Positions 29,445-62,230 of a stretch of DNA of 64,000 nt are shown here, piece after piece. The notes under the pieces were generated by a model, which had not been told where the DNA came from, did not search any database, and saw only the letters and a list, made by a program, of their open reading frames with translations. Location: contig JAWQFM010000004.1 of assembly GCA_033442325.1 (NCBI GenBank), forward strand, positions 1,684,316 through 1,748,315, read 5' to 3'. The stretch is from Salpingoeca rosetta (lineage: Eukaryota; Protista; Choanoflagellata). Numbering within the stretch: position 1 is the first letter of the stretch; each line of letters opens with the position of its first letter. The position numbers and the translations under genes were made by a program.

Positions 29445-32900
<3,456 letters not shown>

Positions 32901-33774
32901 AAGCTGTTCGACAGCAACCGCCTTGTCATTGATCATGAGTGTGGTCTTGATCACCGTTGGCCCCCACACTGTTGCTGTCGCATACGATGGCCGCAATGCT
33001 CTGAGCACACGAGCCACATGTCATGGTGGGCTGTGGGACTGCCATGGTTGTTGTTGTTGCGGTGGTGGTGGTGGAGCCAAGTGGCCACATGCAGCAGCAG
33101 CAGATTCGCGTTGTTCTTCTGCTCCTCCATCCACCGTCTGGCAAGGACAGCTGGCCCACACTGGACATCGCACATGCTTGCAGTTGTCTTGGCGAAGGAG
33201 AAGCGCCATCAGAGGTGGCGCTGCGCGCATGCATGCTGGTGCCAACCAGACGGAGGGAGGAAAGGCACACTTATGATGACACCGGCAGCAGTGGCTGGGG
33301 AGTGTCTTGGAGAGAGAGGGACAGCTGCATCACGTGCGTGCATCAGGTGCACCTGTGTGTGTCCTTGTCTGCATGGACCTATGGACGCTATGTTCACAGA
33401 GGCACGAGGCAGCGTGGAGAAGGTGGTGGAGGGGGGAGGACGAGAGCGTCACGACGTCAGACACGACGCAAGACACGAGAGGAGGTCAGGTGCACCAACA
33501 CAGGCTGAGCACGTGTCATTGGTTGGAAACACATCACACTATCTGTCACTGTCAATCATTGCCATCATCATCGAAGCTGATTGATTGTGATTAATTTTTG
33601 TTTTTTTCGTGTGTTTGGTGTGAGGACTGCGAGGGGGCGTGGCGAGCTTGGGCCCGTTCCAAGCAACGGTGGTTGGCGAAACGAAGAAGAGCTGGTGGAG
33701 GAGCGTTTCTGTGTCATTTCCACACCTCTCTACTCTTGCGTTTTGGTTTTCACCAAGCTACCAAGAGCCAAGCA

Positions 33775-35786
33775 ATGTTCCGCTGTTGCCACAAGCCCAC
33801 AGCGACGGTGCCAGTCGCCGCCCATGACGCCGCCGCCTTTGACATCTTCATCTCGCTTCGCTTCAGCGAGGCACGAAACGCGGGGAAGGCGCTCCAGCGA
33901 GCGCTCGAGGCAAGGGGGCTGAAGGTGTTTCTGTGTGAGGTTCCTCCAGGCTCGAACATTGCCAAGGTTGTGATTCGAGCGCTGCATGGGTGCCGCATGG
34001 CGGTGATCCTTGGCACGCGTACGTATGGCAAAGAGACGGACAGCAGCTTCAGCACATTTGACGAGCTTCAGTACATTGTTGATCGAAGGAAGCCGTTCTT
34101 CCTTGTGAAGATGTGCGACGACTTTGAAGAGCCTGAGGCGCAATTTCACCTGAGGAGCAACGTGGCATATTTCGCTTGGACGCCCAAAAACGAGGATACA
34201 AACATCAGCGTGCCTCCGCCGCTGGTTGATGACATTGTTGGCAAGTTGAAGGTGAGAGCCTGCATATGCGATGGTGCGAGTATGGACCAAGCATGCGCTC
34301 GTGTTTGCATTCGAAGCAACGTTTTCGTGTGTGTTTGGGCCGCTCATGAGTTGTGCCTGTGTGCTGTTGTCCTGTTGTTGACTCACATACAACACACTGT
34401 CTTCCTTCGCTTGCTTCTGGGTAGGAGCAGACCCCCAACACCCTGACCAACGCATCAGGCCAGCAACTGGCTGCCACAACTTCGTTCGACAGCCCACTTT
34501 CTGTCTCTGAACCGCCGTTCAGCCCAGGACGCGAGGATGCGAAGATGTTTGCCATGGAAGTTGGTCATGAGCCATTGACTGTCAAGCGCGGTTGTAACTG
34601 GAAACGGGCGTTGCGCACGGCGTTGGCGGTTGCCATTGTGGTTGGCGTTGCCGTGGCTGTTCCAATCACGGTGCTGTCTGGAGGTAGCGGGAACGGTCCC
34701 GACGGGCCTGGAGGAGGTCCCGACGGGCCTGAAGGAGGCCCCGGAGGGAACATGAGCAACGCGTCCCTTCCAACAACCACCAGCTTGCCGACTACAATCA
34801 ACGGTACCACAAAGGCGACTTTGGCTGCAGCCGGAACTGGAACGTTTGGTCAGCTTGGGCCAACAGCAGACAAGTGGCTTGGCGGCGTGCTGGCAAGCAA
34901 CGGGCTGATCTATGCCGCGCCTTGGTACTCGCCTTCCGTGCTCATCATCAACCCCAGCACCAACACCGTCGACACCACCACCATCTCGGGACTTGGAACG
35001 GATCCAGCCAAGTGGGCTGGTGGGGTGATGGCACACAACGGCCTCGTTTACATGTTCCCTTCAAACAGGCAGTCGATGCTCATCATCGACCCAGACACCA
35101 ATGCGGTTGACATCACGAGCATCCACTCACTTGGCTCGACGAGCAACAAGTGGTATAGTGGCGTTGTGGCCAGCAACCAACTCATCTTCGGCATCCCGTT
35201 GTATGCCACGTATGTGCTGATAATTGATCCGAAAACCAGCACCGCCGACATCACGACGATGGCAGGACTGTCGAGCGGGACGCACAAATGGTATGGTGGC
35301 GTGCAGGCAGACAATGACCTCATCTACTGCATCCCCGTGAAAGCTTCTTCTGTTCTTATCATCAACCCAGGGTCCTTGACGATGGACCTCACGACCATCA
35401 GTGACCTCAGTTCCACAGGCAGCAAGTGGTATGGTGGTGTGCTGGCAGAGAATGGCTTCATCTACACCATCCCAGCCTACTCAGCGACGATACTCGTCAT
35501 CGACCCAGCCACAAACGCGACCAACGAGCTTGTTGTTGCACCCGCACCAGGCTCCTTGAAGTGGAATGGCGGTGTGCTCGCACCCAACGGCAACATCATT
35601 GGCATCCCGCACGACTCTCAATCAGTCCTTGTCCTTGATCCAACAACTAACACCACCGACACAACAACCATCAGCAATCTTCATGGCTCTGCCAAGTGGC
35701 TAGATGGTGTGCTTGCTCCAAACGGCCTCATCTACGGCATTCCACATGATGCTGAGTCCGTCCTCGTCATCGATCCCGGCTGCTGA
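33775..35786 (+). CDS. TIR domain - TM helix - extracellular 7-bladed beta-propeller (type II membrane protein, about 612 aa, 2 exons)
   Basis: Exon 1 33775-34251 (FDIFISLRF...GLKVFL...AVILGTRTYG...STFDELQY); intron 34252-34424 (gtgaga...ctcac...tag), phase 0 and in frame with ORF 34545..35786; basic residues then ALAVAIVVGVAVAVPITVL; G/P/T-rich stalk; seven KWxGG repeats; VIDPGC*. Confidence 0.85.
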
Positions 35787-35817
35787 CGCATGTTTGTGCG
35801 TGTGTGTGTTTGTGGTG

Positions 35818-35873
<56 letters not shown>

Positions 35874-37517: not shown

Positions 37518-38582
37518 GTTGACCTTGTTTGCAGCAACCATCAAACACACGACACTTACAACCGCCCCCTACCTGATCACCCAACACCCGCTTCATGTGC
37601 TCGGCAGGTCGAGGAGTATGTTCGTGTCCTGAAGACGCGACCGCGAACGACGCTACTGATCCATCGTGGATCGTTGACGTGCTACATGTGCCTGCGCAAC
37701 ATGGCACTGCCGTACATCGCCTCCTCCAAATACACCCTCTGGGCAGACCACGGCACCCTATGGAAGGACAAGTACGTTGCGTTGTGTGTTTGTACAAGTG
37801 TGTGTGCGTTTGCATTGTGTGCCTGTGTTTGCATGTTTCACACCCGCTTCTTGTTCTTTAACTCCCCGCCCCACACGTGAACAACTCCCGCCTTCCCCCC
37901 CCCCCCACACACACATTAGCATGNNNNNNNNNNNNNNNNNNNNNNNNNNNNNNNNNNNNNNNNNNNNNNNNNNNNNNNNNNNNNNNNNNNNNNNNNNNNN
38001 NNNNNNNNNNNNNNNNNNNNNNNNNNNNNNNNNNNNNNNNNNNNNNNNNNNNNNNNNNNNNNNNNNNNNNNNNNNNNNNNNNNNNNNNNNNNNNNNNNNN
38101 NNNNNNNNNNNNNNNNNNTCAACCTCACAAACACTCAGCCCCCCCCCCTTTCGGTTGGGTTTTCAGGGGGACAATTATTTGAGGGGGTTCACACCCACAG
38201 ATTGGGCGGAACCTTCATTTTTCCTTCCCCGCAAAACGTTTATATTTTTAAACAAAGGTGCGTGTGCGCGTGTGGTCCCCACCCCTGTTTTTGTCCACAC
38301 AAGTTGGCCTGTGTTTGTTCGTGTGTGTTAGAGCGTTTTTTTTCCCCCCCCCCGGTTTCTTGCCAATCGGGGCACCCCATCCTAACGCCGCCAACATTCA
38401 TGACCCCCACCGTCACCACCGCAGGCCCCACTTTGACCCTGGGGCCCACGGCCCCTTTTTCCCCCCCCTGAGTATCCCCATCTTCCGGCGGTTTGGTCGC
38501 CAGCGCCAAGTGGCGCAGGTCAGGGGTGAAGGCGCCTTTTTTTTTCCCGTGGTCGGTCGGGAAAGGGAGGCAGTGGGGGGGT

Positions 38583-38664
<82 letters not shown>

Positions 38665-51693: not shown

Positions 51694-60658
<8,965 letters not shown>

Positions 60659-60904: not shown

Positions 60905-62230
60905 ATGAGGAGTCTGACGCCAGCCACTGTCGACGTTTTAGCCGTTTTGGTTGTATTCCTGGTTGTGTGCGTGTGCCGCGTCGAGGCCATCGCCACACCA
61001 CCAACACCAAACAGGGCCAAGGTGGCGCAAGATGATAGCGGCGCGATGCACGTCAATTCGAGTGACCCAGCGAATCAGCCCGTGTTCCTGAATGGCGTGG
61101 ACGTCGTTTCGGAGGTTCAAACGCTGCGTGGAACCGTAGCGGCACAGCAGAGCATGCTGCAGGCGTACCAGTCAACTGTTGAGGCGCAACAGAGCATGAT
61201 CGCCGCACACAACAGCACGCTTCAAGCCCAACAGAGCACGATCGAAGCTCTTCGAGGCAGGGTGTGTGAGGCGACTGCCAGCACGTTTGGGCAGCTTAGC
61301 TCAGCAGGAAACAACAAGTGGCGTGGCGGGGGTGTGCTTGCCAGCAACGGTTTCATCTACGCTGCCCCTTACGACTCGCCCTCCGTGCTAATCATCGATC
61401 CCAGCACCAACACCGTTGACACGACCACAATCTCCGAACTTGGAACAGACAGCTACAAGTGGGGTGGTGCTGTGCTGGCACACAACGGCCTCATCTACAT
61501 GTTCCCATCAAACAGGGAGACAATGCTCATCATCAATCCAGACACCAACACCGTTGACACCACAAGCATCCACTCGCTGGGATCTGGTGGAGGCAAGTGG
61601 TGGAGTGGTGTGGTGGCCAGCAACGGCCTCATCTTCGGCATCCCCTTCTTTGCCACCTCTGTGCTGATCATTGATCCAGATACCAACACAGCCGATATCA
61701 CCACGCTGTCCGGACTGTCGAGCCAGGCATACAAATGGTATGGCGGTGTGCAAGCAGACAGCGGCCTCATCTACTGCTTTCCCTTCGTAGCTTCTTCTGT
61801 TCTCATCATCAATCCAGAGTCTCTTACAATGGACCTCACCACCATCAGCGGCTTGGGCACGGGCAGCAAATGGTTTGGTGGCGTAATCACTGGCAACGGG
61901 CTCATCTACACCATCCCAGCATACTCTGCGACGACACTTGTCATCAATCCGGCCACCAACACCACCGCCGAGCTTGTCGTTGCAGATGCAACCGGCTCTT
62001 CGAAGTGGATCGGCGGCGTGCTTGCACCCAATGGCAACATCATTGGCATCCCACACACCTCCCCATCCGTCCTCATCATCGATCCAACCACCAATGCCAC
62101 CGACACCACGACCATCAGCGACCTTGCAGGCGATAACAAGTGGTGGGGTGGCGTGCTCGCTCCAACCGGCCTCATCTACGGCATCCCAGACCATGCTGAT
62201 TCCGTTCTCGTCATCGACCCGGGATGCTGA
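60905..62230 (+). CDS. Secreted 7-bladed beta-propeller protein; closest paralogue of the TIR receptor ectodomain
   Basis: MRSLT...VLAVLVVFLVVCVCRVEA signal; QDDSGAMHVNSSDP...VFLNGVDV; AQQST heptads; seven KWxGG repeats; VIDPGC*. Confidence 0.9.
   Translation: MRSLTPATVDVLAVLVVFLVVCVCRVEAIATPPTPNRAKVAQDDSGAMHVNSSDPANQPVFLNGVDVVSEVQTLRGTVAAQQSMLQAYQSTVEAQQSMIAAHNSTLQAQQSTIEALRGRVCEATASTFGQLSSAGNNKWRGGGVLASNGFIYAAPYDSPSVLIIDPSTNTVDTTTISELGTDSYKWGGAVLAHNGLIYMFPSNRETMLIINPDTNTVDTTSIHSLGSGGGKWWSGVVASNGLIFGIPFFATSVLIIDPDTNTADITTLSGLSSQAYKWYGGVQADSGLIYCFPFVASSVLIINPESLTMDLTTISGLGTGSKWFGGVITGNGLIYTIPAYSATTLVINPATNTTAELVVADATGSSKWIGGVLAPNGNIIGIPHTSPSVLIIDPTTNATDTTTISDLAGDNKWWGGVLAPTGLIYGIPDHADSVLVIDPGC

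Follow-up and report, generated by a model that had tools for sequence, protein, structure and literature searches.

The choanoflagellate Salpingoeca rosetta encodes, on contig JAWQFM010000004.1 (C4 in the following) of its 55.4-Mb, 68-contig genome assembly, a protein that combines an N-terminal TIR domain, a single transmembrane helix and a C-terminal seven-bladed beta-propeller. The gene occupies positions 33775 to 35786 on the plus strand of the window, that is the whole stretch of 64,000 nucleotides analysed here (C4:1684316-1748315), to which all positions without a contig name refer. Two separately listed open reading frames (ORFs), which an initial annotation had joined through a canonical phase-0 intron into about 612 amino acids, do connect in this manner at the sequence level (Table 1). 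The donor reads AAG/GTGAGA at 34251/34252 and the acceptor ...CTTCTGGGTAG/G at 34424/34425 (slashes mark exon borders), with a pyrimidine-rich tract followed by TAG at the 3' end of the intron; as this TAG is the nearest preceding in-frame stop, the frame of exon 2 opens exactly at the splice site. The joined product of 612 residues equals the public model PTSG_02868 with 100% identity and coverage, which NCBI lists as 'hypothetical protein' and UniRef/UniProt as 'TIR domain-containing protein'. Among the contigs looked up as encoding the exact 612-residue protein, only the NCBI genome assembly and no intron-less transcript contig was found. A full-text search of open-access papers and preprints for the locus tag PTSG_02868 retrieved no paper, and searches of the same literature on N-terminal or type II TIR proteins, on TIR-SH2-transmembrane proteins of choanoflagellates and on TIR combined with a beta-propeller and a transmembrane segment retrieved no description of the architecture. 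The earlier suggestion that this architecture had not been described agrees with these literature searches, but not with the databases, where PTSG_02868 is recorded, although uncharacterised.

Table 1. Features of PTSG_02868 with their positions in the window
Feature	Position	Strand	Description and basis
Exon 1	33775..34251	+	477 nt, 159 codons, residues 1-159; ATG at 33775
N-terminal TIR domain, no signal peptide	exon 1, 33775..34251	+	residues 21-159, strand beta-A from residue 22; Pfam, fold
Glu97 codon GAG	34063..34065	+	position of the catalytic Glu of NAD+-cleaving TIRs; Roq1 alignment
Intron	34252..34424	+	phase 0, GT..AG, 173 nt; coordinates as in the public model
Exon 2	34425..35786	+	in phase with exon 1, open to TGA
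Linker and juxtamembrane block	34425..34616	+	residues 160-223 (about 64), ends KRGCNWKRALR; PTSG_02597 match, +5 charge
Single transmembrane helix, read as type II signal anchor	34617..34676	+	residues 224-243; hydropathy
Gly/Pro/Thr-rich stalk	34677..34847	+	residues 244-300 (57); composition and sequon count
Seven-bladed beta-propeller, DUF5074/DUF6923 type	34848..35783	+	residues about 301-612, reaches the C-terminus; Pfam, model
Stop codon TGA	35784..35786	+	sequence

The assignment of the N-terminal domain as TIR, already made in the initial annotation, is marginal by Pfam profile, with TIR_2 (PF13676) scoring 29.0 bits at a cut-off of 28 and TIR (PF01582) 22 bits at a cut-off of 21.3, and clear by fold. 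An AlphaFold model built on an alignment of 19 family members shows a five-stranded, alternating beta-alpha (flavodoxin-like) fold with a mean predicted local distance difference test (pLDDT) of 88.6 and a predicted template modelling score (pTM) of 0.81. When this model was compared with the PDB by Foldseek, the top 50 matches were all TIR domains, with 68 matches at E<=0.001, template modelling scores (TM-scores) of about 0.6 and sequence identities of 13-25%, led by RUN1, SARM1, IL-1RAcPb and C. elegans TIR-1. When 1.84 billion representative sequences were searched by profile, 1139 relatives of the TIR subfamily were retrieved (E<=0.001); in 154 representatives the motifs FISLRFxEA, GTxTYG, FSTxEEL and KPFFLVKMC and a late Trp form a near-invariant signature, of which PTSG_02868 keeps all invariant residues.

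The Glu which had been proposed to occupy the catalytic position of NAD+-cleaving TIRs is likewise present. Glu97, in STFDELQY, aligns with E86 of Roq1, the second Glu of WCLEEL, lies within the first helical turn behind strand beta-C in the TIR model, and is kept in 18 of 19 paralogues and in all but one of the 154 best subfamily representatives. As the alignments of a PDB profile search with the TIR alignment ended before this Glu, the equivalence is drawn from the single-sequence Roq1 alignment and the secondary-structure position. The Trp of Roq1 four residues ahead of the Glu corresponds to Ser93 in PTSG_02868; Ser occupies this position in 133 of the 154 subfamily members, with Phe or Tyr at -5 and often at -2. 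F2UB80, another TIR protein of S. rosetta, produces cyclic ADP-ribose (cADPR) in a Glu-dependent manner according to a preprint (bioRxiv 10.64898/2026.04.20.719644), in the examined excerpts of whose tables neither PTSG_02868 nor its subfamily appears. Fusion partners of the subfamily include SH2, ankyrin, WD40, protein kinase and SecA-like helicase domains as well as C-terminal tail anchors, several members being tail-anchored TIRs. The N-terminus of PTSG_02868, MFRCCHK, contains a Cys4-Cys5 pair (33784-33789) which the closest paralogue lacks and which, as a speculation, could be palmitoylated to hold the TIR domain at the membrane.

The segment read as signal anchor is the only 19-residue window of the protein above a Kyte-Doolittle value of 1.6 and peaks at 2.75. 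Of the 15 residues before the helix, five are Lys/Arg and none is acidic; among the 15 after it there is no Lys/Arg. No signal peptide was detected, since hydropathy in 19-residue windows that start at residues 1-25 reaches no more than 1.28 and the first TIR strand already begins at residue 22. The stalk is composed of 16 Gly, 7 Pro and 10 Thr among other residues, and five of the seven N-x-S/T sites of the protein follow the helix, three in the stalk and two in the propeller; glycosylation of the stalk is probable from these sites. All three features read by the initial annotation, the missing signal peptide, the Lys/Arg-rich flank ahead of a single hydrophobic helix (+5 before versus 0 after) and the Gly/Pro/Thr-rich stalk with N-x-S/T sites, are found in the sequence. 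Both the positive-inside rule and the signal-peptide nature of the nearest propeller paralogues speak for the N-in topology proposed there, and as those paralogues carry signal peptides, the placement of the propeller on the outside gains support that is independent of the charge rule. We consider it likely, with good confidence, that PTSG_02868 has this architecture and is a type II (N-in, C-out) single-pass protein.

The C-terminal domain matches Pfam DUF5074 with 39.3 bits (cut-off 27.2), its relatives carrying DUF6923. The predicted seven blades are evident from seven KWxxG[VA] motifs at a spacing of about 46 residues and from an AlphaFold model (pLDDT 93.3, pTM 0.91) in which 28 strands form seven four-stranded blades. 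The nearest solved structure is the streptogramin B lyase Vgb (TM-score 0.77-0.87, about 10% identity), an identity from which a Vgb-type lyase function is not to be inferred; other near structures are the periplasmic sensor propellers BT4663 and BT4673 of Bacteroides, an archaeal YVTN surface-layer propeller and Leptospira Lp49.

In the genome of S. rosetta this propeller belongs to a large family. A genome search over 55 Mb gave 242 candidates, of which at least 102 are scored matches; these cluster on contigs C4, C25 and C35 (for example C4:763401-764414, C4:1608066-1609025 and C25:289384-290322). By BLAST and codon alignments, the PTSG_02868 propeller is 69-77% identical to 11 paralogues. 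Nearly all of these inspected nearest paralogues and of the annotated members have at their start a short hydrophobic signal peptide and, behind it, an EDDxGAFHINTSDP module; PTSG_02868 has neither and carries the TIR domain, linker, signal anchor and stalk instead. In a maximum-likelihood tree its propeller falls inside a clade of 12 S. rosetta copies with 100/100 support, the others of which are signal-peptide proteins. Relatives at 45-55% identity, often with immunoglobulin (Ig)-like domains, occur in metagenome-assembled genomes of Leptospiraceae and Spirochaetaceae, and further ones in the choanoflagellates Hartaetosiga gracilis and Salpingoeca kvevrii; as the deep branches of the tree are weak (55/88), no claim is made on horizontal transfer in either direction. 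When 24 S. rosetta paralogues are compared, the B-C and D-A loops vary most (mean entropy 1.97 and 1.96 bits), against 0.72-1.39 bits in the strands and 1.13-1.15 bits in the A-B and C-D loops. B-C and D-A loops of propellers lie on one face of the domain, and the pattern therefore fits a diversifying binding surface.

Two further copies of the family are located in the window, at 60905-62230 on the plus strand and at about 27300-26103 on the minus strand. Both possess a signal peptide and the family module, as EEDEYGALHINTSDP in the minus-strand copy and in the more diverged form QDDSGAMHVNSSDP in the plus-strand copy, and identity to the PTSG_02868 propeller amounts to 74-77% and 57%. The closest copies, at 69-77% identity, are missing among the annotated PTSG proteins returned by the searches and may be missing from the older assembly. 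PTSG_10641 (P0319, 844 residues), a propeller family member encoded outside the window, has about 420 N-terminal residues with repeated Tyr motifs (YALTSH, TYATA), then a hydrophobic segment at the position of the paralogues' signal peptide and the propeller, and is either a merged gene model or a type II propeller receptor with a phosphotyrosine-docking tail.

That both exons belong to one gene is indicated by the TIR paralogues. In the four closest ones the TIR exon ends at the same alignment column with GT directly after it (AKLK/GTGATT, AKLK/GTGTGT, AKLE/GTTCAG and AKLQ/GTGTGT). One S. rosetta protein, PTSG_02597, combines in the same order as PTSG_02868 an N-terminal TIR exon with the conserved phase-0 donor, 71% identical over the TIR domain, and a homologous juxtamembrane and transmembrane block: residues 199-246, encoded by exon 2, match its residues 398-444 (KMFAMEV...KRGCNWKR plus helix; 58% identity over the BLAST segment, E=0.004). 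As this block is situated about 150 residues into a 461-residue exon of PTSG_02597, downstream of SH2, it clearly represents an internal membrane anchor there and not a translation start. Because the donor is conserved among the TIR paralogues and the TIR, juxtamembrane and transmembrane segments are co-linear with PTSG_02597, we consider it highly probable that PTSG_02868 is a single gene.

From the same co-linearity, PTSG_02868 is to be read as a lineage-specific fusion, in which the TIR exon and anchor would derive from a gene of the PTSG_02597 type, the propeller from the secreted clade, and the stalk would be new. Pairwise ratios of nonsynonymous to synonymous substitution rates (dN/dS) are about 0.17 for the TIR domain at dS 1.29 and about 0.18-0.28 for the propeller at dS 0.66-1.04, which shows purifying selection on both halves since divergence, whereby pairwise values cannot separate the two lineages of each pair. 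The low dN/dS in both halves and the intact frame of 612 codons argue against a decaying pseudogene.

PTSG_02868 is accompanied by related inverted designs. PTSG_02597 (P0121, 728 residues; C4:552868-553290) is arranged as TIR-SH2-transmembrane helix-ectodomain, with a C-terminal half resembling L-domains or leucine-rich repeats (LRRs), and PTSG_03080 (P0141; C8:207986-208408) has an N-terminal TIR domain, a helix at residue 336 preceded by a charge of +4 and a C-terminal half that is again LRR/L-domain-like. The SH2 domain is a sub-threshold Pfam match in PTSG_02597 and is given by the UniRef name only in PTSG_03080. The two proteins agree with PTSG_02868 in the subfamily of the N-terminal TIR domain (71% and 50% identity), in the intron that follows the TIR exon and in the predicted type II topology, and PTSG_02597 also in the KRGCxWKR juxtamembrane block and helix; they differ by the SH2 domain, the long cytosolic region and solenoid-type ectodomains, whereas PTSG_02868, without an SH2 match and with 64 residues between TIR domain and helix, bears a propeller. 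A metagenomic protein (P0227; sample 3300059473, gene 800-2413 of a 2598-nt contig) contains a TIR domain of the same subfamily, a helix around residue 220 and a C-terminal Kelch propeller, all coded in one uninterrupted ORF of 1614 nt. By its sequence it is to be regarded as an independent TIR-transmembrane-propeller design with an unrelated propeller family. The class of non-animal receptors that the initial annotation had postulated thus gains similar designs with PTSG_02597, PTSG_03080 and P0227, but PTSG_02868 itself is a one-off fusion. A more far-reaching proposal would be an undescribed choanoflagellate class of type II TIR receptors, independent of TLRs, in which interchangeable ectodomains (propeller, LRR/L-domain, Kelch) drive a Glu-dependent catalytic TIR and the secreted propellers act as soluble, variable recognition partners; at present we regard it as rather doubtful.

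The architecture has counterparts and differences in several established systems. Choanoflagellate Toll-like receptors (TLRs) and Kinase TLRs are type I proteins with signal peptide, N-terminal ectodomain and C-terminal TIR domain, and TIR-SH2, TIR-Ank and TIR-Arm proteins have been reported, besides SARM1, only as intracellular proteins that lack a transmembrane segment (Richter et al., 2018, PMC6040629). Like TLR and IL-1R, PTSG_02868 would be a single-pass protein with an extracellular repeat domain and a cytosolic TIR domain, in which engagement of the ectodomain presumably joins the TIRs; the order is reversed as compared to their N-terminal LRR or Ig ectodomain and C-terminal TIR, a propeller forms the ectodomain, and the TIR domain is of a separate subfamily. 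Since it fails the respective tests of architecture, the protein is neither a TLR, having no signal peptide, no LRR match, an N-terminal TIR domain (residues 21-159) ahead of the helix (224-243) and a C-terminal propeller, nor a SARM1 orthologue, as no ARM or SAM match was found and the TIR domain is N-terminal. With SARM1, RUN1, Roq1 and AbTir it shares the TIR fold, RUN1 and SARM1 being the best structural matches, and a Glu at the aligned catalytic position, in contrast to a sequence identity of 13-25%, the replacement of the Roq1 Trp by Ser and the ARM-SAM or nucleotide-binding LRR (NB-LRR) accessory domains of those NAD+-cleaving proteins. The activity of SARM1 and of the plant and bacterial NAD+-cleaving TIRs depends on oligomerisation. 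The propeller resembles the Vgb, DUF5074/DUF6923 and YVTN propellers by its seven blades and by structural similarity (TM-score 0.77-0.87 to Vgb, 0.70 to BT4663, the periplasmic glycan-sensing propeller of a Bacteroides hybrid two-component system); unlike the bacterial propellers, it is tethered to a eukaryotic membrane and to a TIR domain. Teneurins, which have a C-terminal ectodomain of bacterial ancestry and occur also in choanoflagellates, set a precedent for type II receptors in the lineage, although they possess a YD shell and an NHL propeller and no TIR domain. They are described as type II single-pass proteins in the abstract of PMC6422961. Arabidopsis PP2-A5, a TIR-lectin two-domain protein (PMC12355970), equally joins an N-terminal TIR to a C-terminal binding domain, but is soluble, without a membrane span, and uses a PP2 beta-sandwich.

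In the reading that we favour, a TIR-(SH2)-transmembrane gene of the PTSG_02597 type would have gained, in the S. rosetta lineage, a propeller of the large, fast-diversifying secreted family, so that from the N-terminus a cytosolic TIR domain, a linker, the signal anchor, the Gly/Pro/Thr stalk and an extracellular propeller would follow each other. The variable face of the propeller would bind a ligand outside the cell, possibly a bacterial or glycan surface, ligand binding would cluster the receptor and bring the TIR domains together, and the assembled TIRs might use the invariant Glu97 for NAD+ cleavage or a cADPR-type signal. Clustering and NAD+ cleavage, as first proposed in the initial annotation, are pure inference. 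A role of PTSG_02868 as surface sensor is about evenly balanced, and an enzymatic output of its TIR domain is possible, if somewhat less than even; the reading as a whole, a type II surface sensor with ligand clustering and Glu97 catalysis, falls slightly short of an even chance.

A number of observations weigh against this reading and are best considered together with the alternatives. As regards the TIR domain, the Pfam scores barely exceed their thresholds, the Trp-x-x-x-Glu pattern of Roq1 is broken by Ser93, and a TIR homodimer prediction scored 0.02 where 0.32 is the mark, which is evidence neither way. With respect to the fusion, a same-strand propeller within about 7.5 kb downstream was found at none of the 20 nearest TIR loci. 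PTSG_02868 alone among the top 150 TIR representatives matches the propeller profile, and a full-length query against 5.8 billion proteins gave no other match covering more than 65% and none with both domains. The exact TIR-transmembrane-propeller fusion, as far as these sequence searches reach, is thus a singleton and not itself a family. Likewise, no scored propeller lies within 10 kb of the 16 more distant TIR loci by a comparison of coordinates, for which 93 of the 242 propeller candidates were scored.

The alternative that survives best retains the type II protein and changes the role of its TIR domain, which would be a non-catalytic scaffold of the TLR/MyD88 kind, or would, in a membrane lectin or adhesin, recruit TIR, SH2 and kinase proteins. 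The genome harbours at least 36 TIR-encoding loci whose SH2, ankyrin, WD40 and kinase partners could provide adaptors, the SH2 domain of the closest paralogues points to phosphotyrosine-linked scaffolding, the Roq1 Trp is lacking, and the non-enzymatic TIRs IL-1RAcPb, MyD88 and IL-18Rbeta are among the Foldseek matches at similar scores. On the other hand, a Glu97 kept almost without exception in the subfamily is hard to explain without a chemical role, PTSG_02868 lost the SH2 domain present in its relatives, and a catalytic TIR is already documented for S. rosetta in the preprint cited above (bioRxiv 10.64898/2026.04.20.719644). We consider this alternative unlikely.

Transcript data bear on a second alternative, an idle chimera, that is a real lineage-specific fusion with hardly any or no expression and with at most a minor function. 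The region 33450-35795 was compared with three raw RNA sequencing (RNA-seq) runs, each read to about a quarter (1.4-1.6 billion letters), and with one contig run. Per RNA-seq run 57-83 reads were placed, nearly all of them partial matches with loose ends that stem from paralogues, as exemplified by a block of 30 nt (34089-34119) with T>G at 34104; genuine reads on the region, and with them coverage of the junction or of the exons, were found in none of the three. The fourth, contig run is genomic DNA, as one of its contigs crosses the intron unchanged. Of the indexed runs on record as RNA none contains the stretch, and 14 runs guessed to be RNA contain 0.00-0.01 of the sampled words. In the RNA data at hand PTSG_02868 looks silent or very weakly expressed, an outcome that neither supports nor refutes the 34251/34425 junction. 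An idle chimera would be in line with this lack of reads, with a singleton for which no orthologue was found and with the location on a contig that contains many recently duplicated propeller genes and on which products of recombination are to be expected. It is at odds with a frame that is intact despite a dS of 0.66-1.3 to the nearest paralogues, with dN/dS of about 0.2 in both domains and with the retention of all invariant residues of the TIR subfamily; moreover, genes of the inducible immune type frequently show no expression under standard culture conditions. We therefore hold an idle chimera to be quite unlikely.

Very unlikely, finally, is a merging by annotation of two genes, one for the TIR domain alone, with its end in or behind the 'intron', and one for a membrane-anchored propeller, which is conceivable as exon 2 carries its own Met (34545) 24 residues ahead of the helix, behind 39 codons from the acceptor that would be open by chance in an estimated one case in four, as PTSG_10641 may be a merged model as well and as no junction-spanning read was found in the runs examined, but which would leave only 99 nt between the read-through stop of the TIR frame (34446) and this ATG, little room for a 3' end plus promoter, and is opposed by the donor position kept in the TIR paralogues, by frame-compatible exons in the TIR-to-helix order of PTSG_02597, whose homologous helix lies well inside a long exon, and by the quite different start of the other propeller family members with short signal peptide and EDDxGAFHINTSDP module.

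Choanoflagellates serve as reference point for the state before animal innate immunity, and membrane proteins with an N-terminal TIR and an outside sensing domain are missing from published choanoflagellate surveys (PMC6040629). If PTSG_02868, PTSG_02597, PTSG_03080 and P0227 are surface sensors, TIR domains would have been wired to the cell surface more than once, in both orientations and before animals. The propeller family, with more than 100 copies, one hypervariable face and bacterial homologues at 45-55% identity, has the kind of repertoire expected of recognition molecules, and the wider, apparently undescribed choanoflagellate type II TIR group would add to the interest of PTSG_02868. 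Gene-editing tools and well-studied bacterial responses make the hypothesis directly testable in S. rosetta.

Apart from PTSG_02868, TIR genes are found 2-4 kb from propeller genes, mostly in convergent orientation (C35:480193-484110, C23:384316-387229 and C35:543303-547102), where less than one such pair is expected by chance according to an estimate from 36 TIR loci and about 100 scored propellers; both families cluster on the same contigs. In the window, runs of N are located at 37924-38118 and 58815-59463. Long TG/CA microsatellites occur at 31369-31482 and 38586-38657 and, as (TG)n, at 35822-35871 just past the stop codon; they flank PTSG_02868, fill the introns after the TIR exon of paralogues (L014, L016 and L020), appear as CVCVCV in ORF lists, and may favour recombination among the members of a family.

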